Position numbers and translations under genes: made by a program | In this document: one piece after another, positions 5,990-64,000 of the stretch | How the letters are laid out: each line of letters opens with the position of its first letter | Position numbering within the stretch: the first letter of the stretch is position 1 | The notes under the pieces: model-generated | Told to the model about the DNA's origin: nothing | Databases searched by the model: none | The model's input: the letters and a program-made list of their open reading frames with translations, nothing else | Source of the DNA: Azolla caroliniana | Lineage: Eukaryota > Plantae > Polypodiophyta | Length of the DNA stretch: 64,000 nucleotides | Direction of reading: 5' to 3' | NCBI GenBank assembly: GCA_043228905.1 | Contig: JBHGNT010000007.1 | Coordinates: 806,001 to 870,000, forward strand

Positions 5990-6950
5990 ATGCATGGATT
6001 GATAAGTAAGACACAAGTGTTTTGTATGTTTAAGATATCAAAGAATTCTTTTTTAAGTGTTTGCCAATGTTTAGGACTAGGGTTCATCATAAAGCATGAT
6101 AATTGTCCAGTACTGAAACATAGATCTGGTTTGGTGCTATTGACTAGATATCGTATGGAGCTTATTACTTTTCTATAGGGGATGCTTTTTATTTTGGTTT
6201 CTTCTATTGGTGATTTTGGCTTATCTTCAATGGACAATTTAAATGTGGTAGATATGGGTTTGCAGTGTTACATGTCAAAATGTTTTAGAAGATCATCGAT
6301 GTATTGAGATTGTGAGAGTGATATTTGTCCTAATCTTGTATTTTGTTTGACTTCTATTCCTAGAAAGTAGGTCATGGGTCCAAGATCGGTAATTGGAAAT
6401 GCTGATTTGAGCTTTGATGGTTGATTCATTGTGATTTGCAGAAATTGATGAAGTCTTTTGAGTGGTATTCCCCTCCTTCGATTTGTAAGAGTTGAAGTTT
6501 GTGGTTAGTTAAATTTTCAACAAGAAGAAGGTAATTCTTGAATGCAAATAGAGCTCGATCTTTAGTTTTTAAGAAAGTACGAACAATGAATTTATTATAG
6601 TCATCGATAACGCTTATGACGTATAATGATCCAAGTCTCATGGATTTTGTAGGAAAGGGGCCACAGAGATCATTGTGGAGAAGTTGTAGTGGTCGACTAC
6701 TTGTGGTTTGCTAACATGGAAAGGGATGTTGGGGCATTTTTCCTAGAATGCACCCTTTTTTGTAGATTTTCAGATCTGTGGGATGGGCTTTTGGAAGGCC
6801 TAATGTTATGTTATGTAGTTGGCATATTTTTTATTGCTTGTAGATGTGTGTCTGCGACTCAATGGTGCCACAAATTTATTAGGGCAGACTGTTCGTTTGT
6901 TGAGGTATAATGTGCTTCTAGTATGATGGTTGTGGGTGATGGTTGTGGGT
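5990..6950 (-). pseudogene. Degenerate Copia pol fragments (integrase, RT C-terminus), similar to the 48001-58522 family
   Basis: YVISVIDDYNKF..EGGEYHS (6426-6641); DLGPMTYFLG-type DNA and PYRKVISSIRYLVNSTKPDLCFSTG (5923-6237) match RT at 56902-58245. Confidence 0.75.
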
Positions 6951-7402
6951 GTGCTTACATACATACGAATACATACATGTATATATATACGTGAGAATAC
7001 ATGCTTACAAGTTACATACATACGAATCCATAACCCTAGGCTACTAGGCATCTCTAGAGTCTAGACAATAGACCAGAGAGAGAGAGGGAGAGAGGGAGAG
7101 AAAGAGCAGCCTTTGTGTATGTATTTTGAATTGAATTGAAAAGCTAAGCGTCTGCAGAGTAATAGGGATTTGATGAGCATAGCCCACCCCAAGGCTAAAA
7201 GAACCATCGCGAGAGCCAGTCAATCATCGTCCCAATTTTAGAACGCAGAAAATACAGAGAAAATAGAGAGTTAGCCACCATATCCTCGCCTGAATTTGTT
7301 AAAGACTCAAAGAAAGAAATTGATGTCCTAATGGAAACAGAAAGAGTGGGGGTGCCATTACACATTTTGATTGAGCCTTTGCATTTCCATGTTAAGATAG
7401 AA

Positions 7403-7687
7403 TTAAAGCAGAAAAAGCAGCAACCCAACAACAGAAAAAGCAGCAGTACTAGTACCAATAATTGCACTTAGTCCTGCAATAACAGTGGGGGCTGCATTTA
7501 CTGCGGCTTCCACTGCGCGTGCCCCCGCGTCCGCCACTTCCGGAACATCCTCCGGAACCTCCACTTTCTCCATGTCAACTCTCTTCTTCACATATTCGGT
7601 GGCCCTGTATTCCTTGGCTTCAGAGGCCATCATCGATTGGGAGAGTGGCAGCAGAAGCAGAAGCAGAAGCATGGCCATCTTCTTCAT
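7403..7687 (-). CDS. Small 94-aa secreted/membrane-anchored protein (signal peptide, acidic linker, hydrophobic C-terminus; possible GPI anchor)
   Basis: MKKMAMLLLLLLLPLSQSMMA signal-like N-terminus; C-terminus VIAGLSAIIGTSTAAFSVVGLLLFLL; GC-richer than flanks; TATA box ~70 nt upstream; no TE motifs. Confidence 0.65.
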   Translation of the reverse strand: MKKMAMLLLLLLLPLSQSMMASEAKEYRATEYVKKRVDMEKVEVPEDVPEVADAGARAVEAAVNAAPTVIAGLSAIIGTSTAAFSVVGLLLFLL

Positions 7688-7758
7688 GGTGGGTGGGTTT
7701 TGATTTTGTGTTGGCCAATGGAGGAGGAGTCATGGAACTAACACAAGAAAGGAGACAT

Positions 7759-7768
7759 GTATTTATAG
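7759..7768 (-). promoter_or_regulatory. TATA box (CTATAAATAC) of the small secreted-protein gene
   Basis: Canonical plant TATA on the minus strand, ~70 nt before ATG 7687. Confidence 0.55.
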
Positions 7769-7899
7769 TCATGGAGGGAGACAGGGGGGGAGGAGGCAAC
7801 AAGAGTGAAAGAAATGGAAAATTCTTTCACAATTTTGTTACTCATGATATTGGATATTTCGACGGACATGAGGGGGGTGATACTCTATTGATTGATGCA

Positions 7900-9792
7900 A
7901 CCTTACCAATCTAGCCTCATATGAATCCTTACTTTGTGATTCATACTCATGTCGTTTACCAATCATTTTGTGGGTCGTTGGCGATATTTAATATCCGATA
8001 TTCGACCACGTCTCTAATCTATACTTTGTGATTTATGCTCCTGCCCAAGTAAGAGGAGACCTTGGGTCATACCTGACGGAGTCAAGAGGAAAAGAAGAGG
8101 TATAATCACTCCTCAAAATTAAGACACGTCACTCTTTTTTCTTTCTCAAGGAGTCTAGAGGAAAAAAATATGTATAATAACTCCTCAAAATTATGACAAT
8201 TCACTCTTTTTTGTTTCTCAAGGGGTCAAGACGAAAAGAACAGGTATAATCACTCCTCAAATTTAAGACAATTCACTCTTTCTTGTTTCAGAAGGGGTCA
8301 AGGGCAAAATAAGAGGTATTTTCACGCCAGCTAGTAAGTACCCCAATTCACTTTTGAGCTACATTAACTTGAGCAGGTAAGGACTAAAATTTGTTCTTAA
8401 GAGGAAAAAAGAGAGGTATATTCACTCATAAGGTGCATAATTTACTCTTTTTTGTTTCAATAGGTTATCATGAAATGATATCAACAAAAATTTCCAACTT
8501 TACTTGTAAACAAACATACAAATAAAACCACCAAGCTAAACTAGTATCCCATCCTTAGCCATTGATACTCTTGCCAACCAAGAGCAAACCTTGGTACCTA
8601 TCTTAACAATGTCATTGTCTCCCAAGCTAAGAAAACAAGTGTTATATTCAATCCAACACCTAATTAACACAATTAGGTCACAGTAGCACGGAGATGCATA
8701 ATGCAAGTTAATTTTAAATATCACAATTAACCCATTTATGTTTCAAAACGTTGTCTTTTAGCAATCATCCAAAGATGGGCATTATGTGCGTGGTTAATAA
8801 TATTCAATCTCATTTTATTCAGTTTCTAGAATAGCCAACAAAACCACCTTTGGCATCCTAAGATTGTGATTGCTACTCAGGCCTAGTACAAGGAGACCTA
8901 GGGACCTACCTTCATGATTCACTCTTTTTGTTTCTCAAGTTTGGGAAGAGGTATATTCACTCCAAAACATAAGTAACACATGTAGTCCTTGAGAAAAAGA
9001 ACTTAGAGGCATCTTCTTGCAATAATTGTCATGATTCATTGCTTTGGTTTTGAGAGGTTATAATTTTTAACAATTGTTCGATACATGGGCATTATATCAT
9101 CGTTTAGGCAATATCACATGTCAATTTATTCACTTTTAGAATAGCCAACAAAACAACCTTTGGCTTCCTAACTTTATGATTGCTACTCAAACCAATAAAA
9201 AAGAGACCTTGCCACCTACCTTCACAATTTGTTTCACAATGTGGGAAGAGGAAAAGAAGAGGTATATTCACTACAAAACATAAGTAACACATATTATAGT
9301 TCTTGGGGAAAAGAAAGAGATACATTCACATTCTCACGATAAGTGGCACCATTCACTCTTTCTGTTGCAAAAGGTTGTCATTTTTAACAATAGTTCCAAG
9401 CGTGGGCACTATATCATCGGTTGGCCAATATTGGATGTCACTTTAGTCACTTTATAGAATAACTAACAAAACCAGATTTGGCATCTTAATTTTGTGATTG
9501 CTACTCATGCCAGGTACAAACAGACCTTGCTAGTACCTACCTTTATGATTCAATCTCCTTGTTTCTCAAGGTGGGAAGAGCAAAAGAAGAGGTATATTCA
9601 CTCCAAAACATAAGTAATATATGCTGTTCTTGAGGAGAAGAAAGGGTAAATCCATATTCTCGTGATAAATGTCACGATTCACTACTTTTATTTCAAACAG
9701 TTATGGTTTTTAACAATAGTTCAACACATGGGCATTATATCATCGGTTGGCCAATATTGGATGTCACTTTCGTCACTTTATAGAATAGCTAT
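7900..9792 (+). repeat. Degenerate tandem array: 72-bp subunits (8080-8330) plus ~320-bp monomers; inverted homolog of 60830-63540
   Basis: AAGAGGAAAAGAAGAGGTATAATCACTCC at ~72-bp spacing; GGGCA(T/C)TAT landmark at ~8777, 9087, 9404 and 9730. Confidence 0.85.
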
Positions 9793-9922
9793 TTGATATT
9801 ACGATTCTTTTAATATATGCACATGAGGTCACGTGTATACGTATTTGATCGTATATATCTGATAAATATACATATGCATATATCAGTTATTACGTGATTT
9901 CTGTATCGTATGTGTATATTCG

Positions 9923-10133
9923 GGGAAAGGATCTTGGTGGCCGTCCTCACATTTTATTGAGAATGGTGTAGTCACCATCCTTTTTTCAACAAATTTTTTT
10001 GTTGACATCCTCGTTGATCACTTCGATTTCTTTACGTAATGAAACGATCATAGCCACAATGATATTAAGAACATAGGGCTTGACCCACTTCATGTGAGGT
10101 CACTCCTATGACACACATATCCAACATCCCTCC
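9923..10133. mobile_element. Possible short MITE
   Basis: Imperfect terminal inverted repeats GGGAAAGGATCTTGG / CCAACATCCCTCCC and inverted internal CCTCACAT/ATGTGAGG; no clear TSD. Confidence 0.25.
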
Positions 10134-10450
10134 CTCATTACATGGATACGATGCCACCATGAGATCATTCTTACGAAAGGCATTCGTAATGACGTAACCA
10201 TGTGATGGGCCACGTGGGCCTACTCCAAAAAGAGGGCTTATTTGTCTTGACTATTAGGTTGCACTTTGTTGTATGCCATCGTAATTATGAGACTTGAGGT
10301 TAGGTAACATACCAACATAGTTTGTGGTAAATGAGAGGGAAATAAGGACTCTTGACATATATGTTTCTTTAAAAAAACATATATTGGCAAATGCCTCGCA
10401 TATCTCTTATACTTATAAAACGTTAAACATTCAACGTGAGCAATCTATTT

Positions 10451-10512
10451 GGTTAGCTCAAGTGTTTAATGCATTTGTTCTTGAGGTCTAGGTCTCGAGT
10501 TCAAATATGACC
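10451..10512 (+). other. tRNA-derived (SINE-like) remnant
   Basis: A-box-like GGTTAGCTCAAGTG and B-box-like GAGTTCAAAT at tRNA-like spacing; no intact cloverleaf. Confidence 0.3.
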
Positions 10513-11376
10513 AAGACCATACAACATTGTTGATACATACGACTATAATACATGTTTAGACTTTAGGTCTAAGTGCACTTCGGGGTCCTCATAATAGAAC
10601 TTAAAGAGTCGAAACCACATACGTGGGCACATAAACATAATTCATTGTTAACATTTTTTTTTCGTATATAAACTCTTCATGATGCGAACATATATGGTTG
10701 AGCCTCGGGGAGCCGCCATGAAAAAATCGATATAGAGATCAGGGAAAGACATTCATTTGTCACACCCATGGTTTTTAAAACACCTTTGTGTTACCATAGT
10801 GACCAAATCTTGAACCTCATCTCATACGTCTAGAGGGGTATTGACGTGAGATCATGACATCGATTAATGTTGGCCCATGATATGTTTATATCACGACATG
10901 ATGGTATGACTATTTGTATGACCTTATCCTATTTCTTTGCCAGAAATTATCATTCAATAACTCATAAAAATGACCCGATGCCATCCGCTCAAGCGGAAGG
11001 AACTCAAGAAAATCCTCCTGGGCCAATCTCCATTGAGTCATATTTCTTACAAATACAAAATTTCCTTAGTTGAACTGCTCATCAGATGTCTGAACTTCAG
11101 GAATCTCAAAGTCTCGAGGCATGTGTCATTAGTTTATAACGTGACACTAATAGACCCAATGAGCGTCAGGGTGAACCATCATTTGTCGTAAAGCTATTTA
11201 CGAGAGAAAGAAAGGAATGAACCGAAGAAGCAATCTGCACGTAGCTGTCATGAACAGTACTGAGACAGAGAAGGAATTAGTACTAAACGAAGGATTAGTA
11301 CTAAACGAAGGATTAGTACTATGAGAGGTGTGGAACTTCTTCGAGAGAAGGAAGAAGTGAGCGAGACAGAGAGAAA

Positions 11377-11417
<41 letters not shown>

Positions 11418-11707
11418 TGATGATAAGAAAGATATTTATTATATGAAGAGAATATACAACGGTGGCTAAAAGGCTTAAGTCTGGCGTTGAACCAATTTGG
11501 TTCAACATAATGCCTAGTGCCCTCTTTTATAGTGTTTTCAGGAGTAATCCTGAAGCTTCTAGAATGTTCCAGAGAAATCTGGAATATACACTAATTTCCT
11601 ATAATAAAATGTAAATGAAAATAATATCCTACGTATTACAATAGATGGTCTAATGGTCAAGAGCTCGACCCATATAACCTAAGGTCATGGGTTTGAGTCT
11701 TGCCATA

Positions 11708-14700
11708 TCATGACACTATCCCCCCTTTAAAACGACGAGTGTCACGAGTCGTCTTGGATTGAGGACGATGGAAGTCTTCAAGGAGAGCACGAGCATTGGT
11801 TACATTCTCGATCGGTTCCCAAGTACGTTCGCTGGGACTATAGCCTAGCCAATCGACTAGATAGTAGAGCTTGTTGCGAACAATCTTGGAATCAAGAATG
11901 GCGGCAACCTCGTACTCCGGCCCATCTTCAAGCTCGATCGGGGGTGGAGGTTGGATAAGACGTTCTGGGATGGTGCTCTCGTGGTAGGGTTCGAAGAGAG
12001 AACTATGAAACACCGGATGTATCTGAAGTTGAGGAGGTAGATCGAGACGAAAAGCAACATCATTAATCTTTCCAATAATACGGAAAGGACCTAATCGCCG
12101 ATAATCCAACTTCTCACATGGGCGAGTAGTCTTGATGTGTCGTCGTAGCAACCACACCCGATCTCCAATATTAAAACTAGATGGAAGTCGATGACGATCC
12201 GCGTAGACCTTGTGTGTTTGTTGAGCTTGCTGGAGATGAGTAGATAAATCCGCTTGTATCTTGCGTAACCGCTCCAAACGATCCTCCGCGCACGGATTTG
12301 TGGACACCTCTGGGGTTTCAAGTACACTCCACCGGGGGTGACATCCCGTATAAGCATAAAATGGCGTAACTTTAGTGGATGCGTGGATAGAGTTGTTATA
12401 GGCAAATTCGGCGAAGTGGAGAATATCTGCCCAGTCGTCCTGATGATAGCTGAGAAAGCACCGCAGATACTGCTCCAACGTTTGATTTGTTCGTTCAGCT
12501 TGGCCGTCAGTTTGTGGGTGGTAGCCGGAAGAGAGGTTACAAGTGACCTTGAGCATGTTAAAAAGGTGCTTCCAGAATTTTGACACGAACTGGGGTCCAC
12601 GGTCGCTGATGATACTATCGGGGAGTCCATGATGCCGACATACTTCACGCATGACAATTTCGGCAGTGTCTTCACTGGAGATCTCCTTAGTACATGGCAA
12701 GAAATGAGCCATCTTCGTATATCGATCGACCACCGTTAGAATCGCATTGAACCCCTTAGAGACTGGAAGATCTGTGATGAAGTCTAGAGCAATGGATTGC
12801 CACGGCTTGCTTGGAATTGATAATGGTTCTAATAAACCATATGGATGATGCCTTGGCATTTTCTCTCTACAACATGTATCACAAGTCTGAACAAAATCCT
12901 CGACAAATTGTCACATACAGGGCCACCAGAATGATCGTTGTACTAAATGTAATGTTTTAGTACTACCAAAATGCCCAGCTGTATATGTGTCATGACAGTT
13001 TTGTACTACTCGAAGGCGGCAAGAACCATTAGGAACATACAAAAGTTCTTTAAAGAAGAGTAATCCATCATAGTATTTGAATTGTCGATAGTCCGTACCT
13101 GGTGGTTGCGACTGTGAACACGACGCTCGAGAGGGATCAATTTGTGCTAGTATAGCTTGGGCGAACGCATCTGTCTTCAAGTCTTCACGTATGGTATCGA
13201 TAACGCGGGAATCCATAGGCATGTCAAAGATTTGTGTTGCTTGTAATCGTGCCGGTCCCAAGATGACTTGTTTTTGGTTATCGAAAGCTGGCTCGCCGGG
13301 ACGGGGTGCTAGATACGAACGCCGTGATAATGCATCTGCCTTCCCTTGGTGCCTCCCCGGACGATATGTAATTTTGAAGTCGAAACGCGTGAGGAAGTGG
13401 GCCCACCGAGCTTGACGTCGATTCAACACACGAGCATCCTGAAAGTAGGCAAGATTCTTGTGGTCACTAAATACGGTGACTGGATGAGAGGATCCCTCCA
13501 GAAAATGCCTCCATTGCATAAAAGAATCCACTATTGCCAATAGCTCCTTATCATGGATTTCGTAGTTGATTTCGGCGGCATCAAACTTGCGTGAGTGAAA
13601 AGCCACAGGATGTAGCTTTTCATCATTCCCCTGTTGTGACAGAATGCTCCCCAATGCAAAATCCGATGCGTCAGCTTCGATAATGAATGGTTTCTCCGGA
13701 TCGACATGAGCTAGAATTGGAGCCGATGTAAATGCTTTTTTAAGACTCTCGAAAGCCATGTCCGTTTCTTCAGACCAGATGAATGGTTGTCCCTTCCTGG
13801 TAAGTTGTGTGAGAGGTAGAACGATCTTTGAGTAATCCTGTATGAACTTCCAGTAAAAATTGGCAAAGCCTAAGAAGCATTGCACATCCCGTACCGAACG
13901 CGGAGTCTGCCATTCTACCACCGTTCTGACCTTAGCTGGGTCCATGGAGATGCCTTCTGACGAAATGATGTAGCCGAGAAATTCCACTTGGTTGCACCCG
14001 AAACTACATTTTTCTAGCTTTGCATACAGACCATGTTCTCGAAGTCGTTTTAGTACTAATAGTACATGAGAATCATGTTCTTCTTGGGTCTTTGAATAAA
14101 CCAGTAGATCATCCAAATAGATGATCAAACAATCATCCAATAGATCTCGGAATATATCATTAGCCATGTGCTGGAAGACTGCCGGCGCATTAGTGAGGCC
14201 GAACGGCATGACAGTATACTCGAAGTGCCCATATCTGGTGCGAAACGCGGTCTTCCATTCGTCTCCTGGTCGGATCCGTACGAGGTTATATGCTCCCCGT
14301 AAGTCGATCTTCGTGAAGAACCTGGCACCATTGATCCGTTCTAAAAGACTTGAGATAAGGGGAAGAGCATACCTATTCCTGATTGTAACCTTATTCAAGC
14401 CACGGTAATCTACAACGAGACGAAGCGATCCATCCTTTTTTTTGACGAAGAAAATGGGCGCACCGGCTGGAGATTTCGAATGCCGAATGAAACCATTTTC
14501 CAAATTCTCCTCTATATAGGCCCGAAGGACTTCCAGCTCGGTTGGTGACAAATTGTAGATCGGTCCCCATGGCGGCTCTTTTCCCGGTTGTAAATCGATG
14601 GGGCAATCGTACGGTCGATGATGAGGAAGTGTGTTGGCTTGTACTTTATCGAACACATCGGTGTAATGGCGATACTTCTCGGGAAGTTGAACGGTGGATT

Positions 14701-15244
14701 CTTCTTTAGTGGTGTTGGAGGGGTTTACTGATATTGCAAAGAGGAACATTTCCTCCTTGTGCCCTTCTTTACGCAACTGACGTAGCGAAATGGTTGCCAT
14801 CTTCTGAGTTGACCCTTGGGTTTGTCGACACCGGATTTCTCTTGTTCTCCAATCTATGTCAGGGTTATGTAACTCGAACCACGGTAGTCCTAAAACTATA
14901 GGATGTTCTGGGATACTAATAATATTAAATGATACTACACATACTAAGTTATCTAGGACAATATTAATGGGCTCTGACTCTTCTAGGATATTTCCGGAAG
15001 CAATGGGACGTACATCAATGACTACTACAGAGGCTGGACACTGGAGTTTTCTTAGGGATATCTTATGAGCTTGAGCAAATTTCTTATCCATAAAGCAAGA
15101 GTTAGCTCCGGAATCTAGGAGTGCTAGGACATGTACTGGAGGGGTACTTTTAGTACTAACTATTACTTGGGCTACGAACACATCACTAACTTGCTTAGAG
15201 GGAATGGAACCACTAATGGGCTGCACAGATCTAGGGCTGTCCAA
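11708..15244 (-). CDS. pol: Pol (PR-RT-RNaseH-INT-chromodomain) of Tcn1-like element 1, one in-frame premature stop at 12911-12913
   Basis: LLDSGA, YLDDLL, EADASDFALG, integrase with D,D35E, chromodomain EYEVAAILDS..YYLVDWLGY..TWEP; ORFs 12911-15244 and 11708-12859 are in the same frame. Confidence 0.92.
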
Positions 15245-15270
15245 CCAAACGGCTCCTATTTTGGCTGGAC

Positions 15271-16422: not shown

Positions 16423-16599
16423 GGGATGAAAGAAAAGAGGAATAAAAGATTAGTAGGAAATGAGAGAGACAGAAGGTAGGAAAATTGGTTCAAACTGTCA
16501 TGAACAGTACTGAGACAGAGAAGGAATTAGTACTAAACGAAGGATTAGTACTATGAGAGGTGTGGAACTTCTTCGAGAGAAGGAAGAAGTGAGCGAGAC

Positions 16600-16642
<43 letters not shown>

Positions 16643-21509: not shown

Positions 21510-22234
21510 TCACAACTCTACCATCTTAATTTTTGGATTGCTACTCTTGCCAAGTACAAAGAGAGCTTGGACCTACCTTCACGATTCAATATGTTTGTTT
21601 CTCAACGTGAGAAGAGGAAAAGAAGAGGTATATTCACTACAAAACATAAGTAACACATATAGTTCTTGGGGAAAAGAAAGAGATACATTCACATTCTCAA
21701 GATAAGTGTCACCATAAACTCTTTCTGTTGCAAAAGGTTATCATTTTTAACAATAGTTCCACACATGGGCATTATATCATCTGTTCGCAAATATTGGATG
21801 TCACTTTAGTCACTTTATAGAATAACTAACAAAACCAGATTTGGCATCTTAATTTTGTGATTGCTACTTAGGCCAAGTAGAAAGAGACCTTGGGACCTAC
21901 CTTTATGATTCATCTCCTTGTTTCTCAAAGTGGGAAGAGGAAAGAAGAGGTATATTCACTCCAAAACATAAGTAACATAGGTAGTTATTGAGGAGAAAGA
22001 AGAGGTATATTCCCTCCAAAACATAAGTAACATATGTAGTTATTGAGGAGAAGGAAGAGGTATATTCATATTCATATTCATATTCATTTTCCGAACCTAG
22101 GCATTAATTTATCTAGTGGCCAATATTGGATGTCGCTTTAGTTACTTTATAGAATAGCTAACAAAACCACATCCAATCTTGTATACTTTGTTATTGATAC
22201 TCATGCTAAGTAAGGGGAGACTTTGAGACCTACC
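21510..22234 (+). repeat. Continuation of the ~320-bp repeat array after the Gypsy insertion
   Basis: Same monomer as 9087-9790 (GGGCATTATATCATC, GAGGTATATTCACTCCAAAACATAAG); ends abruptly at the Copia LTR at 22235. Confidence 0.85.
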
Positions 22235-22618
22235 TGTTGAGATATCAGTCCCTCCAGAATGGGAATCGGAGAAGCCGGAGAAGAACGAGTCAGATCAGAG
22301 TGATCCGGAAGGATACCTGGAAGGGGTCTGGCTCGATTCGGCATGAACCGAAAGAGAGACAGATTTGTAAATATGTTTCTTATGGGCTATTAAGGCCACA
22401 TTTGTAAATATGTTTCTTATGGGCTATTGAAGCCACATTTGTAAATAGCCCGTAAGTTATATGAGTATAAATATAACTACGGCAAATGGGTAGTGTCTGG
22501 TGGCTATTATCAGTCTTGTTGTACAAAGAGAGAGAGAGGGAGAGGGAGAAAGAGAAAGATACAAAAAGCTTCTCTGTTGTAACCTCTAGTTGGCAAAGTC
22601 AGAGCTCGAGGTTGTTGC

Positions 22619-30499: not shown

Positions 30500-30730
30500 A
30501 TACTACAAGGTGTCCTCTTACTTGGCATGAGTATGAATCACAAAGTATAGATTGGATAGGTGGTTCTGTTGGCCATTATATAAAGTGAACAAATTGTCGT
30601 GGAATATCAAATGTCATGTATGGCTAACCATCCTCATGGAATGTTTGCTAGACAACACGAGTATCAATCACGAGGTTAGGATGCGATACTACTAGAGTGG
30701 CAAGGTTGGTTGGTCTATAAAGTGAATAAA
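30500..30730 (-). repeat. Remnant of the repeat-array family, same orientation as 60830-63540
   Basis: CCTCTTACTTGGCATGAGTAT..ATAAAGTGAAC matches 63360-63450 and 62460-62530. Confidence 0.7.
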
Positions 30731-30779
30731 GCATCATCGAGTTTACATCCTTCCGAAATATCCTATATATTCTCGAATA

Positions 30780-30926
30780 TCAAAGTTGTTAAACCATTTT
30801 ATGGCACTCCTGGATTTGGAACTTGTCCAAGGATCAATCTGAAATATCCTAAGTGTAAACTAGGAATGTGGAGATTGTTGCCAAAATGGGAGAGACGATT
30901 TACCTGGTACAATATGAGTGATCTAT
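30780..30926 (-). pseudogene. 5' fragment of a paralog of the 490-aa membrane gene
   Basis: Aligns to 60470-60616 (TAAACC.TTTTATGGC.CTCC..GATTTGG, CCTGGTACAATATGAGT); start ATG changed to ATA; upstream homology continues at 30927-31018, 31693-31722, 38647-38700 and 45437-46405. Confidence 0.8.
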
Positions 30927-38704: not shown

Positions 38705-38725
<21 letters not shown>

Positions 38726-44700: not shown

Positions 44701-45436
44701 ATTTACAAATATAGCCTCAATAGGCTTAATGAAAACATATTTACAAATATGTCTTCACTTCCGGTTCTCACTGGATCTTTTCCGGTTCTTCACCGGGTCC
44801 TCTTCATTCATAACCGGATCCCATCCGGAGGGACCAATTTCCCAACAATAATGATTGAGGAAAGGTTGGTGGAATCATTAAGGATGAAGTGGGAAGATGC
44901 TAAGAGGACAAAGCTAGAATACTATATTGCAAATGCCAACCCTCAATGTTGGTCTCAATATAAAGCAAGAATGCCTATTGATCGTATCCAACCTTATCTC
45001 ATTACCAGTATGAGTAGTAATGCTCGTAGAGCCCTTACATTACTTCGGACTCGATCTCACAAGTTAGTTATTGAAGTAGCATCATGGTATCAAAATGTAA
45101 CTAATTTGAAGACATGCAAAGTATGCAACGGAGGCATGGTAGAGGATGAATGTCACTTGCTCTTCACATGCTCAACATATAGTGCAATTTGTTCAAGATA
45201 TGCTGACATACTAAGAGGGAGCGATAACTTAAGTGCTATACTTAAAGACACCACCGAGAAGGTTGAGCTCATCTGTGTATGATTTATTCACACAGAGAGA
45301 CTTTGTGTATCAATGTATGAATACCCCTTCTTAGGAAGGAGACACATAATATCAAGAACACATGTATACTCTGGTCCCATAGATCAAAATTGGCCTCTTT
45401 ATGGACGATACAAATTCTAATTCTAATTCTAATTCT
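38705..45436 (+). mobile_element. 5'-truncated RTE-like LINE, interrupted by a Copia at 40282-44847
   Basis: RT motifs PIFKAGDK..NY, QVGFRP, FKKAFDTV, GVKQGCPLSPTLF, YADD, YLG; C-terminal RTRSHKL..CKVC..EDECHLLFTC (44853-45282); (AATTCT)4 tail at 45413-45436; (CT)n on both flanks. Confidence 0.88.
40282..44847 (-). mobile_element. Tork/Tnt1-like Copia, degenerate, protease region deleted
   Basis: LTRs 40282-40786 and 44344-44847; TSD GTAAT/ATAAT; PBS TGGTATCAGA at 44331-44340; gag 43778-44215, integrase 42785-43453, RT YVDDML 41612-42739. Confidence 0.92.
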
Positions 45437-46405
45437 CTCTCTCTCTCTCTAAGAGGATATACTTTAGCCTAGAATATATTTGCAATACACTTTTGGTGAA
45501 GTGATATTGACCCTTAGCATGGAAACTCAAGAAGAAACAAACAATCATGGCTTATATTTGCTCTTTTATGTAGTTAAACATTCTTAGCCTTCATTTCTAG
45601 ATGCGTTAAAATGGTAACCTTTTGAAATAAAAGGAGTGGATATATTAGTGTTAAAAATGATAACCTTTTTGAAATAAAATGATACACTTTAGACTAGAAT
45701 GCAGTACACTTTTTGTGGAGTGATATTGACTATTGTATGGAAAACTTAGGAAGAAATTGTTACAAACGGTCATGGCTTATATTGTCTCTTTTATGTAGTT
45801 AAACCTTCTTAGCCTTCATTTCTACATGCTCACCACCACCTTGAGAAACAAAAATAAATAGATTCTATTGGTTAGGAGTTGGAATAAAAATACCTCTTCT
45901 TTTCCATCTTCCCCCTTGACAAACAAATAGATGGAATGTGAAGGTAGGTCGCAAGGTCTCCTCTTACTTCTCATGACTATCAACACAAAGTATACAAGAT
46001 TTTCCATGTGGTTTTATTGGCTATTCTATAAAGTGGATAAAGTGACATCCAATATCACCAAACCAATGATGTAATGCCAATAATTGGAAATATTGTTAAA
46101 AAGGATAATCTTTTGAAACAATACAAAGTGACTTGTGATGCTTATGGTGAGGATGCTTACGAGAACTACATATGCTACTTATGTTTTGGAGTGAATATAC
46201 CTCTTCTATTCCTCTTACCACCTTTAGAAACAAGGAGATTGAATCGTGACGGTAGGTCTCAAGGTCTTTTTGTACTTGGCTTGAGAGGCAATCACAAAGT
46301 TAGGATGAAAGGTGGTTTGGTTGGCTATTCTACAAAGCGAATAACGTGACATCCAATATTGCCTAACTGATGATATAATGCCCATGTTTGGAACTAATGA
46401 TATTT
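45437..46405 (-). repeat. Promoter and repeat-array segment of the middle module copy
   Basis: Direct homology to 60800-61725 (GTGATATTGAC..CATGGCTTATAT, GGAGTGAATATACCTC, TGATGATATAATGCCCATGTTTGGAAC.AATGATATT). Confidence 0.8.
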
Positions 46406-48173: not shown

Positions 48174-48219
<46 letters not shown>

Positions 48220-55275: not shown

Positions 55276-58200
55276 TTTCAATGCTCTAAAAACACTACAA
55301 TGTAATAATCTAGTCCATGGTTTGCCAAAAGAACCTTTCAAGCCCATCTCTTTGTGTGAAAGTTGTATCCTTGGGAAAATGCCCCAACAACCATTCCCAA
55401 AGCATAGATCTAGAGCCACTACCCCTCTTGCATTAGTACATAGTGATCTATGTGGACCTTTTCCAACCCCTTCTCTTAGTGGAGCCAAATATTTCATTAG
55501 CTTTATAGATGACTTTAGTTGATTTGCAATCTTGCATTTTCTCAAGTACGAAAGTCAAGCTTATCAAGCATTCAAAGAATACAAGGCTCGAGTCGAAGTG
55601 CAAACATCATCAAAGATTAAAAGTCTTCAAACCGATGGTGGTGGTGAGTATATGTCTCATGAATTTCAAAGTTTATATCAAAATGAAGGCATACATCATA
55701 GAATATCAACACCACACACCGCAACAAAATGGTGTATCCGAAAGGAAGAATAGATCACTTCTCAATATGGCTCGAAGTATGTTACAATTTGCTCACTTAT
55801 CACCTCAATTTTGGGAGGAAGCGGTTGGCACCGCTTGCTATATTCAAATCGAGGATTTCATAGATCCTTGGGGCTCCAAACCCCTTATGAACTATGGCAT
55901 GGTCACAAACCTAACTTCAGTAACCTTCGTATTTTTGGTTGTGATGCTTATGCTTTTGTGCCAAATGTTCAAAGAAATAAGCTAGATCCAAGGGCTACAA
56001 AATCCACTTTCATCGGATATGGAGAAGCTTCGGGATACAAGGCATACAAGCTCTATGATCCACAAAAACGAAGAATATTCTTTAGCCATAATGTCATATT
56101 CCAAGAAAATTGGCCTTCTACAAAGGTTTCTTCTTCACTCTCTTCTAATCTACCTCCCTTATTACCTATCCCTACCCACTTACAACCATCTTCCTCAACC
56201 ATCTCTAATATTAATAGCTCTCATATTGAAGGAGCCAACATTAGCTCATCCTCTACTTCCACTATTTGTGTTGCTCTTCCATCTATTCACAAGGCAAAGA
56301 TCAATCCTACTCAACCAACTAATTCTTCTTCTCATCTTCCCTCATTCCAAGCTCTAGATGATTCTCTTTCTCATACTCCTTTAAATACACATTGTTTAAC
56401 TCCCTCAAATAATATAAATAATGTTTTCTCCATTACCTCTCCTAATCCTTCATTCCAAGCGTCATCACCAACTTCTCCACCAAACTCTCCACCTCTAAAG
56501 TATAGATCTCTAAGTAGTATTTATGAACAACTTGATCAAATGGAAGCACATTTCATGGACTTGGACCATGAAGCTTATATTCAAGAAGAAGATATTCCAA
56601 CCCTTAGTGATGACATAAATCTATTGGCCAAAGATGCACTTTCCGGATCGGATTCTATCAAATGGAGAAAGGCTATGGAAGAAGAAATGAAGGCTTTACT
56701 TAAAAATGGTACGTGGACCCTCATTGAGCCTCCAAAAGATCGACAAATAATTGGTTTAAATGGGTCTTACGCATAAAGCGAGATAGTAATGGCAATCCAA
56801 TTTGTTTCAAGGCTCGTGTAGTTGCTCGAGGATTTTCGCAAGTACTAGGTATTGATTTTCAAGATACATTTAGTCCAACGCTAAAAATATGTGGTTTTCG
56901 AATGCTCGTTGCTCTTGCCGCACAACATGATCTAGAATTGCATCATTTGGATGTACAAACGGCTTTTCTTCATGGAGATTTAGATGAAGAACTTTATCTT
57001 CAACAACCACAATTTTTTGAAGATCCAAGTCATCCGACACATGTTTGTCGACTTCGTAAATCTATTTACGGCCTTAAGCAATCTCCACACATGTGGCATC
57101 ACAAACTACACTCTTTTCTTATAAAAGTTGGATATCATCGTCTAAACAATGAGCCAAATATCTATGTTAGAAAAGCCAAATCCAATTTTGTTATCATAGG
57201 TGTCTATGTTGATGATTTGCCTTTGATCTCTAACTCTAAATTTTATCTAGCTATTGCAAAGAAGGAACTTGCATATGTTTTTCCTATTTCCGATTTAGGC
57301 CCTATGACCCATTTTCTAGGCATCAAAATAACTCAAAATAGAACAAATCATACTATCTCATTATCACAATCAAATTATATTAATTCTATCCTCCAAAGAT
57401 TTGATATGCTCCATAGTAAACCTATTAATACTCCTCTTACCTCTCCATGTAAACTATCAAATGATGATTCTCCCAAAAATGAACGAGAAATTTTCGAAAT
57501 GAAGGATGTACCCTATAAGCAAATCCTTGGGTGTATAAGATATCTAGTAAGTTGCACAAGTCCCGATATTTGCTTTGCCACCGGTTTTCTTTCTCGTTTC
57601 ATGGCTAATCCAGGACCAAAGCATTGGATCGCACTCAAAAGATTACTACGATACTTGAAGCATACTCAACATTATGCGTTGACTTACTCCGCCACACAAT
57701 CCGAGTCAACCACACTTGTGCAAGGATGGACAAATCCCTCTGGCCAACTAATTGGTTGGTCAGACTCGGATTGGAGGGGAGATGTAGACGATCGCAAGTC
57801 AACAGGTAGATATGTTTACACACTCGATGGCGCTGCAATTTCATGGAAGTCGAAGAAACAAACTACCGTAGCATTGTCATCCACCGAAGCTGAATATGTT
57901 GCCGCGGCTTTTGCGGCTAAAGAAGGCATATGGATTAAAGCTATGCTCAATGAATTTAAGTTATTTACTATTCCACCAGTGACTTTATTTTGTGATAATC
58001 AATCTTGCATCAAGTTAGCCAACAATCCGAAGATGAGCGACAATATTCGTCATGTGGATTTGAAGCATCACTTTCTTCGTGATCTTATTGAAACGAAGAA
58101 GATAGAATTAAAGTTTGCTCCCACTCATCAAATGTGGGCCAATTTTCTAACGAAGCCTCTTCAACATTCTAAGCACATTATTTGTTCCAAGCAAGTTGGA

Positions 58201-58440
58201 TTAATTGATGTAATCGAAGATAAAGATGAAAACCTACACTTCTAGAAATTTTTGCTTAGGGGGGAGTGAGGAAAATAATAAGCAAAAATAAAATAAAATA
58301 TATTAATATATAGTTCTTATGAAATCGGTTTCCTTTCATGAGAAGGAAACCGTAAGTCTATTGGTGGGTCTTATAAAGCCACCACCAACGTTGTATTCAT
58401 TCTTGGGCATTATAATAATAAAACGCTTTCCGTGTTTCCC

Positions 58441-58488
<48 letters not shown>

Positions 58489-59143
58489 TTCTTTCTATCT
58501 CTCTTTCTTTTCTTTCCCAACAAAAGGGTACAAATCCACAAATATTCTCACTTCCACTTCAGTTTAATCTAGTCTAATCGCCATGCTAATTAAACACTGA
58601 GCACTTAATGAAAATAAAACGAAGCTCGATAAAGAAAATTATGAAGCCTCAATGTAGTAGTTTAAGTGCGTGCATGCTAGCACAATAATGAGGACTACTT
58701 ATATGGAAACATAACCAAAACCATGATCAATGGCTGATTAAGGAGTAGATGGGAAAGAAAACAATGGACACAAGAAGCATATATATAGTCGATGTATATA
58801 AGAAAAGCATGGAATTACGGTAGATGTGGATGTAGCGGGTTGGAGAATGAATATAATAACGATATAGAAGGAGTGTGGACATATAGACTTGCATGATGCA
58901 TACTACATTCATATTATATACATACTCGGGGTAGGATATACATATCTGTATACATCTGTATGTTAATGTATGTTATGTAGGTGAAAAGGAGGCTGCAATG
59001 GTGATTGAATTGAGTGTGAAGGAAAATGGCTACTGGAAGAAAAGGTAGAAATATTATACAAAGGGAGTCTGCTGAGTGTGTAAGGGTAAAGAACCAAAAT
59101 AACAGACAAGAAGGAGAGAGAGATCTATATGTATAGAGAGATA

Positions 59144-60616
59144 TTATATGGTAGCATACTGGTCATAGGAACACTTGTGCCAATCAGAGATGGTGAGATA
59201 CAGAGCGCTCGAGAAGGCCACCACCATCACGACGAGCCGAATGAAGTTGCACATTTTGTTCCAAAGCTTATTCGGAGAACACACTTGTAGACCGGTAAAA
59301 GTGACAACGATATAAAAGCATAGATATGGCACCTGAACAATTCCCTTACCACAGTTAAGGACATCCCGATTTCCGAAAGATTGAACGAGGCTTGGAAGAA
59401 TGATCCAGCACACTAAATAGTCGAAGGCAATGACGGAGAATAGTCGCCAATATCTTTTGATGTGTAATGCCCCTACAGATATTAGTGTCGCAGGAGGAGG
59501 AGGATCAGGATTGTCGCAACGCCATTGTGGCCGTCGTGCGGACATATCGCTAGAAATGCGATGGATTGTATCGGGTGTAAGGTGGATGAGGAGGGGTTTC
59601 CGAATACTGTACGTGATGCCCAAGAGATGGGTTAGTGCGCGCCTGAGCATAGGGACCGCATAGAACATGGCGATGGACTCTATGGGGCTGATGCTTACCC
59701 CCTTTCTCCAGCGATTGTAGACACTGTAGAGAAAGCCGACAGCTTGGACCAGGAGGACAATGGTCGCGAACAGAGTGGTGTTCACCGCCCCTCTCGCATC
59801 ACTCAGTATGGAGCCGCTTCGCTCCCACAAAGGCGATACAATCCCGAGACCGGATTTCAATAGCCGGGGGAGCGGTCGATGAGCTACTACGCCTGCATCA
59901 TCCTCAGCGGCAGAAGCAGACTGGGCTTGAGTCGAATGGAGGACTCCCCATTCCAGCAGCCTCAATGCCGCTTTTCTTGTCCCGTGGCTTTCCGATGAAG
60001 AAACTGCGTAGCGCAGCAATCCCATATCCGGCCTCGTCTTCACCTTCAAGATTGTTGCAATCTTCTTCGCGACATTGCAGCTGAGCGGAACCTCGCCCAC
60101 GATCAAATGACTGTTCTTCACTATGTCCTTCTTTGTTTTCTTGTCCGTCACTTCCTTAGTAAATTCCTCAGGGATGAGCTCCCGCACCAACGCCATCAAA
60201 TCTCCTCCTCCATTGGCAGCTGCATTTGTAACAGGAAGTGGTGGTTCTAGGTAGATGTAGAATTGGCAACATGCTACCATCATCCGACTCTCTCTATCCA
60301 CATCAACTAATTCTCCATCTAAGTAAGACTCGGTTTGCAAGTTGAAGGCATCGGTAATCGAGAGTAGCATCGATTCCATGATAGTGTCGAGTATTGTGGA
60401 GACGAATCGAATTATGATGTCGAATACCCGATTGTTGCCATCGATTCCCAGTTTCGTGCTGCCATGTTTCAAAGCATTGTAAACCGTTTTATGGCGCTCC
60501 TCGATTTGGGACCTGTCCAGGGACCAATCCCAAATCTCTGCAGTGTAAACCAGGAACGTGGACACTGCTGCCCAAATGGTAAAAAATCGTGACCTGGTAC
60601 AATATGAGTCATCCAT
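59144..60616 (-). CDS. Intronless 490-aa multipass membrane protein of unknown function
   Basis: Long clean ORF, GC-richer than flanks, about 6 hydrophobic segments (1 N-terminal, about 5 C-terminal), no TE domains; degraded paralog at 30780-30926. Confidence 0.85.
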   Translation of the reverse strand: MDDSYCTRSRFFTIWAAVSTFLVYTAEIWDWSLDRSQIEERHKTVYNALKHGSTKLGIDGNNRVFDIIIRFVSTILDTIMESMLLSITDAFNLQTESYLDGELVDVDRESRMMVACCQFYIYLEPPLPVTNAAANGGGDLMALVRELIPEEFTKEVTDKKTKKDIVKNSHLIVGEVPLSCNVAKKIATILKVKTRPDMGLLRYAVSSSESHGTRKAALRLLEWGVLHSTQAQSASAAEDDAGVVAHRPLPRLLKSGLGIVSPLWERSGSILSDARGAVNTTLFATIVLLVQAVGFLYSVYNRWRKGVSISPIESIAMFYAVPMLRRALTHLLGITYSIRKPLLIHLTPDTIHRISSDMSARRPQWRCDNPDPPPPATLISVGALHIKRYWRLFSVIAFDYLVCWIILPSLVQSFGNRDVLNCGKGIVQVPYLCFYIVVTFTGLQVCSPNKLWNKMCNFIRLVVMVVAFSSALYLTISDWHKCSYDQYATI

Positions 60617-60800
60617 GCTGTTATAACTTATTATTATTATTGTTATTCAATAATGCAGCTCACACTGCCAAATCTCACTTAATATCTCTATTAAGTATTA
60701 TACACATACATTTTAAACACCCTTATTTCACTACCACCTTATTATATTTGAAGATAATTTAGGTTTCCATTGTACACCTTATATATATATGTAATCAATA

Positions 60801-60829
<29 letters not shown>

Positions 60830-60832
<3 letters not shown>

Positions 60833-63540
60833 ACATATACATTACCCTAGAATAGATATGCATTACACTTTTGATGGAGTGATATTGACTCATAGTACGG
60901 AAAACTCAAGAACAAACAAACGATCATGGCTTATATTTGCTCTTCACTTGCTCTTAAGCATTCTTAGCCGTCATTTCTAGATGCTCACCACCACTTTCAG
61001 AAACAAAAATAAGTAGATTCTATGGTTAGGAGTTGGAGTGAATATACCTCCTCTTTTCCTCTTCCCCCCTTGAGAGATGGAAAGTGAAGGTAGGTTACAA
61101 AGAGACTATCAATCACAAAGTATACAAGATTCTATAAAGTGACATCCAATATTACCAAACCAATGCAATGATATAATGTCAATGTTTGGAACGGTTGTTA
61201 AAAAGGATAAGCTTTTGAAAAAAACAGAATGAATTGTGACACTTACCGCGAGGATGTGAATATACCTCTTTCTTCTCCTCAAGAAGTACATGTGTTAAAT
61301 ATGTTTTGGAGTGAATATACCTCTTCTTTTCCTCCTCCCACCTTGAGAAACAAAGAGATTGATTCGTGAAGGTGCGTCCCAAAGTTGGGATGACAAAAGT
61401 TGTTTTGTCAGCTATTTATGACGCGAATACATTGGCATCCGATATTGCGTAACCGATGATATAATGCCCGGGTGTAAAACTATTGTTAAAAATGACAACC
61501 GTTTGAAATAAAAGGAGTGAATCGTGAGTCCTCTTACCACCTTAAGAAACAAGGAGATTGAATGGTAAAGGTAAATCTCAAGGTCTCTTTGTACTTGGCT
61601 TCAATAGCAATCATAGAGTTAGGATGCCAAAGCTAGTTTTGTTGGCTATTCTATAAAGTGAATAACGCGACATGCAATATTGCGTAGCTGATGATATAAT
61701 GCCCATGTTTGGAACCAATGATATTATAAGCTAGGTCCTAGTCCTAAGGTCTCTTTGTATTTGGCATGAGTATCAATAACAAAATACGAACACAAGACTA
61801 CACTCGTGATGTGGTTTCGTTGAACATTGTATAAAGTGAACAACACGTGATTGAAGATTACCAACCACCATCAATGTAATGCCTATCTCTGGATTGATTC
61901 CTAAATGAAAACCTTTCGAAACATAAAAGAAAGTTGATTGTGATATTGACAAGTAGGGATTGTAACCCTAATTACCCTCAAGAAGTACTTATGAGCAGAG
62001 AATATATGTAAAGAGATTGAATGAATAAAGTAGGCACCACAGTCTGCTCTTAGTTGAAGTGAGTATTAGTCACAAGTTTTGGATGTCAAACTTGATTGGC
62101 CTAGTGGTTTTGTTTGTTTCTTTATGTATAAACTACTAATATAAAATTGTGTTATTTACATGTTGGCGTGGAAATACCTCTACTTTTCCTCTTGACCCCT
62201 TCAAAAACAAGAAAGAGTGAATTGTCTTAATTTTGGGGGGTGATTATACCTCTTCTTTTCCTCTTGATCCCTTGAGAAACAAGAAAGAGTGAATTGTCGT
62301 AATTGTGAGGAGTGATTATACCTCTTCTTTTCCTCTTGATCCCTTGAGAAACAAGAAAGAGTGAATTGTCGTAATTTTGAGGAGTGATTATACCTCTTCT
62401 TTTCCTTTCGACCCCTTGAGAAATAAACGGATAAATTGAATCATGCAAGTACGTCCCAAGGTTTCCTCTTACTTGGCATGATATAGATTGGAGAGTGGTT
62501 CTATTGGCATTTTAATAAAGTGAACAAAGTGTGGTCGAATATCGAATACCGCCAACCATACACAAAGTTAGGATGCTAGAGGTGCTTTCGTTGGCTATAG
62601 TATAAAGTGAATAAACTGGCATCCAATATTATCTAACAGATGGTAGAATGCCCATGTGTGGACAATCCTTACGCTTATGTCAAGAATTTGAATATACCTC
62701 TTTCTTCTCCTCAAGAAATGCATGTGTTACTTATGTTTTGGAGTAAATATATCATTTCTTTCCCTCTTCCTAGGTTTGAGAAACTAAGAGATTGAATCGT
62801 GAGGGTAGGTCTAAGGGTTTCTTTGTACTTGGCCTGAGTAGCAATCACAAAGTTACAATGCGAGAGGTGGTTTTGTTGCCTATACTATAAAGTGAATAAA
62901 CTAACATGTCCAATGTTGTCTAACAAATGGTAACATGAGTATCAATGGCAAGTTAAGTATGCCATACTAGATTAGCTTGGTGGTTTTCGTTGTTTGTTTA
63001 CTAGTAATGTGGAAACGTTGTTGATATCACTTAAAGAGTGAATATACCTCTCTCTTTTCCCTTGATGAACAAATTGTACTCCTTAATAATTGGAGTTCAT
63101 CTAGCTCAAAAGTCAATTGGGATACTAACAAGTTAGCGTGAAAATACTACTTTTTTTCTCTTGACCCCTTAGAAATAAGAAAGAGGGAATTGTCTTAATT
63201 TTGGTGAGTGATGATATCTCTTCTTTTCCTCTTGACCCCTTGAGAAACAAGAAAGAGGGACTTCCTTTAGTTTTGGGGAGTGATTATACCTCTTCTTTTC
63301 CTCTTGGCCCTTTGAGAAATAAATCCAAGATTTGAATCATGCACGTATGTCCCAAGGTCTCCTCTTACTTGGCATGAGTATAAATCACAAAGTTTAGACT
63401 AGAGAGGTGGTTGGTTCTAGTGGCCATTCTATAAAGTGAACAGAGTGTGGTCGAATATCGCCAACAACCCACAAAATGATTAGTAAACTACAAGAGTATC
63501 AATGACAAAGTAAGGATTGATGCAAGAGTACTAGATTGGC
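60830..63540 (-). repeat. Degenerate ~320-bp/72-bp repeat array upstream of the membrane gene
   Basis: CTCTTCTTTTCCTCTTGA at 72-bp spacing (~62250, 62322, 62394 and 63140-63320); ~320-bp monomers are reverse complements of 8770-9790. Confidence 0.85.
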
Positions 63541-63760
63541 GACGTTGCATCAATCAATCGAGTATCACCCCCCATCTTACATCCATCGAAATATCCAATA
63601 TTCCAAATATGAAAGTTCTAAAAGAATTTCCATTTCTTTCACTCTTGTTACCTCCCTTCCCCTAAACCCTTCCTATTTATATGACTATTCTCATGTACAG
63701 TTTCTTGCACTTATGCCCTAACCCTCCGGTTTTGAATTAAATTCAAAATACACAAATGTT

Positions 63761-63796
<36 letters not shown>

Positions 63797-63880
63797 GTTG
63801 AATGTCTAGACATGCCTAGGGTTATGTATGTGTATATACATGTATTTGTATGTATGTAAGAATGTACGTATGTGTGTATA
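63540..63880 (+). other. Inverted homolog of the flanks of the small gene, lacking the ORF
   Basis: 63540-63710 matches the reverse complement of 7735-7915, and 63730-63865 matches that of 6955-7145; about 570 bp including ORF 7403-7687 is absent. Confidence 0.75.
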
Positions 63881-64000
63881 TACATATATATATACATTAG
63901 ACAAAAATATATAACAATCAATTTTTGTAAGGCATATAAAGGAATCGTTGGATAGGTTTTCAAAAAAAATTGGATTGTATATGACGCAAGAATTAGAATA

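Follow-up and report, generated by a model that had tools for sequence, protein, structure and literature searches.

Anatomy of a repeated two-gene unit

The window, a stretch of 64,000 nt of Azolla caroliniana DNA, carries three occurrences of one unit after removal of transposons, each of them partial and interrupted by transposons (Table 1). Within the unit, gene A comes first, followed by a short (CT)n-bearing promoter, an array of monomers of about 320 bp with 72-bp sub-repeats, and gene B. The intact gene A and the intact gene B belong to different copies and are separated by 51.5 kb of the same segment. The right copy keeps gene A but lacks a clean 571 bp; since the downstream remnant of gene B joins the upstream remnant directly there, it is the entire gene B transcription unit that is missing. 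The left copy is inverted and has an intact gene B, and neither tblastn nor sensitive BLAST found gene A sequence beyond the left array. The middle copy, in direct orientation, is down to 45 codons of gene A, with about 1 kb of array left. Its pieces at 30927-31018, 31693-31722 and 38647-38722 are collinear with 60617-60842 of the right copy, and its segment 30780-31019 aligns to 60469-60739. The copies are 70-87% identical to each other, with 70-83% in the unique flanks and 60-91% among monomers. Where the unit ends on the A side is known from one copy only.

Table 1. Features of the three unit copies in the window, with strand and basis of assignment
Position	Strand	Feature	Basis
6977..7151	-	Gene B downstream flank, left copy; right-copy homology stops here	BLAST
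7152..7722	-	571-bp segment with B ORF and 5'/3' untranslated flanks; absent from right copy	alignment, BLAST
7403..7687	-	Gene B, intact 94-aa ORF: signal peptide, acidic middle, C-terminal hydrophobic tail, no cysteine	ORF, homologues
7760..7767	-	TATA box TATAAATA, 73 nt upstream of gene B start codon	sequence, alignment
8023..9791	.	Left array part 1, in reverse orientation to right copy; 72-bp sub-repeats 8078-8319	TRF, self-BLAST, nhmmer
21510..22236	.	Left array part 2, continuing part 1 past retroelement	self-BLAST, monomer phase, nhmmer
22460..22563	.	Tentative A-side (CT)n edge of left copy; weak match (67% identity), largely microsatellite	BLAST
30506..30799	.	Monomer and B-upstream-like piece adjoining middle-copy A fragment	aligns to 63353-63629, 70.5%, E 8e-40; nhmmer
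30792..30926	-	Gene A fragment, middle copy, codons 1-45, 58% amino-acid identity	tblastn
45408..46404	.	Middle array, direct: A-proximal (CT)n edge and about 2.5 monomers	self-BLAST, BLAST, nhmmer
58752..60564	-	Stretch under X5 contigs: gene A and about 390 nt of 3' flank, genome-collinear	contig layout; X5 guessed to be RNA
59144..60616	-	Gene A, intact 490-aa ORF without introns, no Pfam family	ORF, hydropathy, homologues
60617..60842	.	Gene A upstream region, (CT)n run at 60800-60826	matched by middle-copy 38647-38722 and 45408-45604
60843..63478	.	Right array, degenerate monomers of about 320 bp; 72-bp sub-repeats 62174-62423, 63153-63322	TRF, nhmmer monomer map
63332..63727	+	Gene B upstream remnant, right copy, degenerate TATA region	aligns to 8085-7723, 72%
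63721..63897	+	Gene B downstream remnant, right copy	aligns to 7151-6977, 72%

Much of this anatomy had been described in an earlier note on the same DNA. All the blocks named there were recovered at accurate coordinates by self-BLAST and more sensitive BLAST (E 1e-15 to 1e-159, well outside chance), and self-BLAST bore out its claim of a unit occurring three times after excision of the transposons, all three copies being partial. It was also right that no single copy holds both genes: the right has A only, the left B only and the middle just the A stump. The 320/72-bp repeat that it placed between the genes corresponds to TRF periods of 326 and 72 in an array of about 2.6 kb. The excision itself was correct. 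The left array is split by an 11.7-kb retroelement insertion (9792-21509) with reverse transcriptase (RT) and integrase domains inside, and the monomer phase runs unbroken across the junction, with model position ~300 resuming at ~303. Finally, the right copy supports an ancestral unit in which a membrane-protein gene and a small signal-peptide gene diverge across the array. We infer the divergent A/B layout because this copy keeps gene A, the array and both B flanks.

The two genes and their relatives

Judging from its reading frame and homologues, gene A is a real, conserved coding gene. Its product would be a membrane protein with four to five hydrophobic helices in total, including those at about 281-299, 393-411, 425-443 and 458-476 in the hydropathy profile. 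Homologues fall into six clusters (E 4.5e-40 to 6e-07; 31-47% identical), and one homologue, on contig L001, is full-length and collinear. When 1.84 billion representatives were searched exhaustively with phmmer, six short homologues came from ENA, JGI and Logan contigs, besides one repetitive 963-aa protein. The ENA contigs with homologues were judged to be fern-derived. There was no Pfam family in gene A, gene B or any A homologue, no match in a PDB profile search, no match to gene A or the A-family profile in word-index protein searches, and no database record for either protein by exact-protein look-up. An AlphaFold model of gene A from an 11-sequence alignment (pLDDT 42.7) was too poor for fold comparison. 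No array-like or B-like sequence occurs 0.9-1.5 kb upstream of the diverged A homologues (L001-L003, L007 and L008), which carries little weight at 35-40% protein identity.

Two other origins of gene A were considered, and neither is supported. A retrogene origin is without support, there being no poly(A) remnant downstream. Kinship with Ascomycota was suggested solely by a language-model feature match (0.95, with a low recognition score); no sequence homology to fungal members was found and, since the word-index searches were empty, fungal kinship or horizontal transfer is without sequence support.

Gene A is probably transcribed, given the contigs of run X5, which is guessed to be RNA. In the right copy these contigs do not extend over the array. 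Variation in gene A was sampled in two further samples, X2 and X5. Between the assembly and X2, 4 nt of 1437 nt differ, changing 3 of 479 codons (99.7% identical), and X5 contigs spanning the differing sites show the same changes. All three codon differences are non-synonymous, which hints at relaxed or diversifying selection over simple constraint. Paralogous A contigs are found elsewhere in the same genome, with a summed depth of 3-5x single-copy over parts of the gene. A close relative has at least five A-family paralogues (77-97% nucleotide identity), mostly broken by stops, frameshifts and deletions, one of which adjoins a retroelement.

Gene B, too, is a real, conserved coding gene as far as its alignments tell. 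Its homologues P0020 and P0021 (E 1.8e-15 and 4.8e-14) are 53-55% identical to it, and the four coding indels among the homologues (60, 6, 12 and 18 nt) are all in-frame. The dN/dS is 0.56 at dS 0.24. The ends of the protein are conserved and its middle is variable, and the 5' and 3' flanks of the gene are conserved as well. B-bearing sequence homologous to the 571-bp segment of the left copy is also present in L005/L009, and a TATA element, TATAAAAT, stands at the matching position in L004/L005. The product may be a secreted, membrane- or GPI-tethered peptide. It resembles the small GPI- or tail-anchored secreted peptides of plants, such as arabinogalactan peptides, in having a signal peptide, a short ectodomain and a hydrophobic C-terminus running to the last residue. 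However, it lacks Pro-rich glycomodules except for one Ala-Ala-Pro-Thr. Cysteine is absent from gene B, P0020 and P0021 alike. Look-alikes of gene B in the Atlas score just 0.79.

The array and the age of the copies

The monomer HMM places array blocks at 8023-9791 and 21527-22235 (left), 45864-46402 (middle) and 61025-63478 (right), about 18 monomer equivalents in the window (nhmmer). The array is not scattered genome-wide (such dispersal without the two genes was what the earlier note had named as refuting its module): in run X1, where single-copy contig depth is about 21 and the array peaks at 235, the summed contig depth of the array is at most about 11x single-copy, Logan contig depth being a rough proxy and no true copy number. 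In total, 67 contigs match 5.3 kb at 80% identity or more. In the close relative, an intact gene B on contig L009 has about 740 nt of the same array immediately upstream (nhmmer E 1e-43). This array is up to 89% identical to 46162-46403, which makes the middle array its closest known relative; its monomers are 83-89% identical to those of the window, and the B region about 67-73%. By depth and linkage, then, the array is low-copy and tied to the A/B module. A genome-wide satellite was rejected: the depth is low, and the monomers (60-91% identical) have not been homogenised within arrays. No Rfam family was found anywhere in the window, and the folded monomer had no structured RNA on either strand (z-scores +1.6 and +0.5). 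The array is therefore not a cluster of RNA genes such as 5S rDNA or snoRNAs.

The LTR pairs in the window are 89-100% identical in self-BLAST, and each transposon insertion is private to a single copy. It follows that the duplication preceded the insertions; on this comparison the unit copies predate all datable LTR insertions.

Origin of the locus

We consider it probable that the locus is a lineage-specific fern gene pair with a common intergenic minisatellite, which was locally duplicated and has decayed by birth-and-death. The ancestral unit would have been about 5-6 kb long, with gene A leftward, a promoter of about 200 bp with (CT)n, about 2.6 kb of monomers, a TATA promoter and gene B rightward, and the 72-bp sub-repeats would have been placed toward the B end of the array. 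The array may have been born by unequal exchange or slippage of B-upstream sequence. It may act as regulatory sequence upstream of B and perhaps of A, and would be neither product-encoding nor mobile. The unit would have gone through at least two local duplications, one of them inverted, long before the present transposon insertions. Reciprocal loss then removed the B unit from the right copy by the clean 571-bp deletion, left the left copy without A and reduced the middle copy to a stump. Since the copies lost A or B reciprocally, each gene can do without the other within a unit. Genes A and B would be neighbours by descent and not a proven functional pair.

This history has the features of local segmental duplication with birth-and-death, namely adjacent partial copies in both orientations that are 70-87% identical, keep different genes and were later invaded by private transposon insertions. 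In contrast to the usual plant tandem gene clusters, the unit has a 2.6-kb minisatellite core, and both gene families are uncharacterised and lineage-restricted. The locus reveals these two fern-restricted families, one of a predicted multi-helix membrane protein from an intronless gene and the other of a putatively secreted peptide that lacks cysteine and ends in a hydrophobic stretch.

One further reading adds to local duplication and decay and does not compete with it. The array could be an epigenetic switch, with 24-nt siRNAs and RNA-directed DNA methylation (RdDM) co-regulating A and B, which we regard as unlikely. In Arabidopsis, the tandem promoter repeats of FWA and SDC attract siRNAs and are known targets of RdDM. 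As at these genes and the upstream repeats of maize b1, direct tandem repeats here lie just upstream of a TATA promoter, and the repeat-gene association is conserved between loci: the array adjoins the B TATA promoter in the left copy and on L009, and it begins about 200-400 bp upstream of the A start codon. This locus-specific minisatellite stays with the peptide gene at loci that are paralogous or orthologous. However, with about 8 monomers of 320 bp it is much longer than its counterparts, and it is flanked by two genes that diverge from it. The higher identity of the L009 monomers than of the B region is in keeping with a switch, but orthology of L009 with the middle copy would account for it just as well. 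Moreover, the monomers are old and degenerate with no maintained homogeneity, and X5 yielded no array transcripts.

It is unlikely that the unit, or gene A alone, is the cargo of a large low-copy mobile or self-propagating element whose internal repeat is the array, as the earlier note had offered for a fallback. Both orientations occur within 57 kb, gene A has paralogous contigs elsewhere in the genome, and the multi-copy, mostly broken A family of the relative, with one member beside a retroelement, might likewise reflect mobile or selfish behaviour. It is this decaying family that keeps the reading alive as a minor rival. Direct support was lacking, however. The unit ends have no terminal inverted or direct repeats, only microsatellite matches, and self-BLAST gave no repeat pair flanking the unit, its A-side end being seen in one copy only. 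Neither A nor B has a transposase, RT or helicase domain, copy number is low, the 17-30% divergence of the copies means that they have not moved recently, and the copies in the window are all adjacent, as expected of local duplication.

We consider it very unlikely that A and B are a co-evolving pair, whether a recognition locus with an atypical multipass receptor and a secreted ligand, or a poison and antidote kept by tight linkage. Several observations are consistent with such a pair. In the ancestral unit A and B stand head-to-head, and the families of both are confined to the lineage and evolve fast, with birth-and-death turnover in that of A. All A codon changes between samples are non-synonymous, and the intact genes still lie within 52 kb. 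In the Papaver S locus, as here, a novel multi-helix membrane gene (PrpS, the multipass 'atypical receptor') stands beside a signal-peptide gene (PrsS, the small secreted ligand), neither with a known domain (PMC13033167, PMC3695568). However, the ligands of S loci are small secreted cysteine-rich proteins with at least four conserved Cys (PMC13033167). PrsS is cysteine-rich with four conserved Cys, whereas gene B contains no cysteine and terminates in a hydrophobic tail. Papaver S alleles are about 50% identical (PMC13033167, PMC3695568), whereas gene A of the assembly matches both X2 and X5 at 99.7% identity and is not hyper-polymorphic. In addition, no copy retains both genes here, and ferns are not known to have a pollen-pistil interaction. 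The dN/dS of gene B gives no sign of positive selection, the relative has at least five A paralogues against one B locus seen, and the structure model of gene A is too poor for binding analysis. The self-incompatibility-like receptor/ligand pair of the earlier note receives no support from the cysteine-free B, the three codon differences in A or the reciprocal losses.

Its toxin/antidote alternative fares no better. Such a pair would be expected to keep both partners in every maintained copy, since loss of the antidote alone is lethal, and the copies here keep A only, B only or neither whole gene. That A and B are halves of a fern-lineage cell-cell recognition or transmission-distorting system, an atypical multipass receptor with a tethered secreted peptide, with the minisatellite as joint epigenetic control and the decayed copies as former specificities, is a reading that we also consider very unlikely. 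The importance of the locus would be far greater if the pair were a recognition system, but no test run here supports one. The locus has the appearance of a local duplication in ordinary decay. It illustrates cleanly how genes can be lost reciprocally after such a duplication in a fern genome rich in transposons, and the nested insertions provide a relative time order.

The repeat array and the three partial copies of the unit

The array that the earlier note described between gene A, a putative membrane-protein ORF, and gene B, a small signal-peptide ORF, is real. TRF reports periods of 326 and 72, and a monomer HMM places approximately 18 monomer equivalents in four blocks of the window (8023-9791, 21527-22235, 45864-46402 and 61025-63478). 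The coordinates given in that note hold up. The monomers are 60-91% identical, with no homogenisation within the array. The left array is full-length (~2.5 kb) and keeps its monomer phase across an 11.7-kb insertion at 9792-21509.

Each copy of the unit is incomplete in its own way. In the right copy, the stretches homologous to the DNA upstream and downstream of B are joined directly, so that a clean 571 bp, left-copy 7152-7722, is missing there. The missing segment contains the B ORF and its untranslated flanks, and what is left of the TATA region in this copy is degenerate. In the left copy, no trace of gene A was found past the weak match to the A-proximal (CT)n edge. All that remains of the middle copy is codons 1-45 of A (at 30792-30926, with 58% identity), along with the promoter of A and ~1 kb of array. 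Its pieces at 30927-31018, 31693-31722, 38647-38722 and from 45408 onward are collinear with right-copy 60617-60984 and are separated by three insertions, of which one is a solo LTR and another a Sola-like element. The opposite end of the A stump adjoins a piece of monomer and B-upstream-like sequence (30506-30799), an arrangement that fits former tandem units collapsed by deletion. Between copies, the unique flanks share 70-83% identity. The last homology of the right copy with the left lies 103 bp before the end of the window at 64000. No transposon insertion is common to two copies, and LTR identity falls no lower than 89%, in the most diverged pair, so the duplications are older than the transposon insertions.

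Features of the right and left copies and LTR pairs in the window
Feature	Positions	Strand	Remarks
Right copy: gene A	59144-60616	-	ORF
Right copy: upstream DNA of A, ~200 bp	(CT)n run at 60800-60826		array next
Right copy: B-upstream homologue	63332-63727		matches region upstream of left-copy B
Right copy: B-downstream homologue	63721-63897		joins B-upstream stretch directly
Left copy (inverted): gene B	7403-7687		TATA box 7760-7767
Left copy: A-proximal (CT)n edge	22460-22563		weak match
LTR pair	16-424 / 3519-3932		90% identity
LTR pair	11289-11715 / 16520-16937		97% identity
LTR pair	22621-22979 / 27208-27566		97% identity
LTR pair	40280-40788 / 44342-44849		89% identity, most diverged
LTR pair, older copia-type element	48000-48253 / 58266-58522		94% identity
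LTR pair, young LTR retrotransposon	49893-50448 / 54657-55212		556-bp LTRs, 100% identical

Genes A and B and the putative role of the array

The product of gene B has 94 aa, with a signal peptide, an acidic middle, a hydrophobic tail reaching the last residue and no cysteine. Two homologues were found at 53-55% identity. All four indels in the aligned coding region (60, 6, 12 and 18 nt) are in-frame. Conservation extends to the 3' flank and to the promoter, TATA element included, and dN/dS is 0.56 at a dS of 0.24. The transcription start of B is predicted to lie ~30 nt downstream of the TATA box at 7760-7767. Taken together, the homologues, in-frame indels, conserved flanks and dN/dS ratio indicate, at the level of sequence comparison, that B is a genuine, moderately constrained coding gene.

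An intact B homologue occurs on the public contig L009 (1452 nt), which comes from an ENA study that also supplied homologues of A. It is directly preceded by ~740 nt of the same array, with a 72-bp unit and the B-proximal monomer (nhmmer E-value 1e-43). The L009 monomers reach 89% identity with the middle array (46162-46403) and 83% with 61529-61955. On the simplest reading, L009 would be a close relative's orthologue of the middle copy, whose B end is gone in this genome. The contigs of relatives are all 3.6 kb or shorter, which limits the view of A-array-B linkage to this window.

By its predicted role, the array would most likely be regulatory DNA upstream of B, and perhaps of A as well. 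The promoter repeats of FWA and SDC are targets of RdDM, and by analogy it is plausible that this array could be one as well. No Rfam family matched anywhere in the window, a folded monomer showed no RNA structure beyond expectation, and the array is left uncovered by the contigs of X5, a run guessed to be RNA.

Gene A is an intronless ORF of 490 aa with four clear hydrophobic helices within its C-terminal 210 residues. No Pfam or PDB relative was found, and its AlphaFold model is poor (pLDDT 43). An exhaustive phmmer search recovered homologues in six clusters (31-47% identity). They lie on short contigs from ENA, JGI and Logan, and contig L001 carries a full-length collinear homologue. At least five paralogues at 77-97% nucleotide identity are present in the same organism as L001, most with a stop, frameshift or deletion. 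Contigs of X5 span 58752-60564 at 99% identity or more; if X5 is indeed RNA, which is a guess, the coverage would match an unspliced transcript of A carrying ~390 nt of 3' UTR. X5 and X2, a run under another organism label, have in common four nucleotide differences from the assembly (59264-59265, 59922 and 60222), and the resulting codon changes, L451R, Q232P and A132E, are all non-synonymous (3/3). The public ENA 'metagenome' assemblies ERZ1034375-ERZ1034399 (L001-L003, L005, L007-L009) and ERZ27227295 (L004) contain low-coverage DNA from a close relative of this fern; the contigs, at 1.2-4.5x, include both the B-plus-array locus and the mostly broken A family. In the language-model features of the ESM Atlas, A lies nearest to hypothetical-protein clusters of Ascomycota (score 0.95, 217/256 features, low recognition). 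Fungal kinship gains no support from any sequence search.

Copy number and origin of the unit

In X1, the run of the source sample, contig depth, a rough proxy only for copy number, is ~21 for single-copy contigs and sums over the array to a peak of 235, mostly 30-130; parts of A reach 3-5 times the single-copy depth. The window's own monomers can explain most of the array depth. Across 5.3 kb, only 67 contigs match with an identity of at least 80%. The low depth and few contigs indicate that the module is a low-copy family rather than a genome-wide repeat. A loose end at 63656 represents one more B-promoter variant, absent from the window.

The above observations fit a divergent, lineage-specific gene pair that was duplicated locally long ago together with its intergenic minisatellite, after which the copies would have undergone reciprocal loss and transposon invasion. 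A minor rival, raised by the earlier note, is that the unit was cargo of a mobile element. Such mobility would be in keeping with the relative's A family, which is multi-copy and decaying; however, no terminal repeats were found at the unit ends, and the copy number is low. That note had also proposed a recognition locus. On the features tested from the definition given in PMC13033167, this proposal fails: B is not rich in cysteine, and A hardly varies between samples. Nor does any single copy hold both genes. The reciprocal loss of A and B contradicts a toxin/antidote pair.

Transposon background

The window as a whole is a patchwork of transposons nested in one another. Self-BLAST gives the LTR pairs of the table, and ORFs in the DNA between them encode RT, integrase-SH3 and copia gag domains. 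The young LTR retrotransposon at 49893-55212, whose identical LTRs point to a very recent insertion, lies inside the older copia-type element (48000-58522), and both of its LTRs carry a 28-bp tandem repeat (50372-50476 and 55136-55212). The solo-LTR-like insertion at 31019-31692, which splits the promoter of the middle-copy A stump, is 75% identical to these LTRs (49906-50354 and 54670-55118) and related to 40305-40551. The Sola-like element (31723-38646) contains long internal tandem arrays at 34046-36285 and 37309-38166, built of 33/52/104-bp units on a palindromic AGCTAATTAGCT core, plus 84-bp units. Its empty site is seen in the right copy at ~60740-60790, where the homologues of 31693-31722 and of 38647 onward are contiguous. 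Finally, (CT)n and GTAT-like microsatellites recur in the 3' flank of A (58899-59123), the A promoter (60800-60850), the 3' flank of B (6977-7151 and 63740-63897) and several LTRs of the window. This recurrence probably points to a microsatellite bias across the genome and not to termini of the unit.
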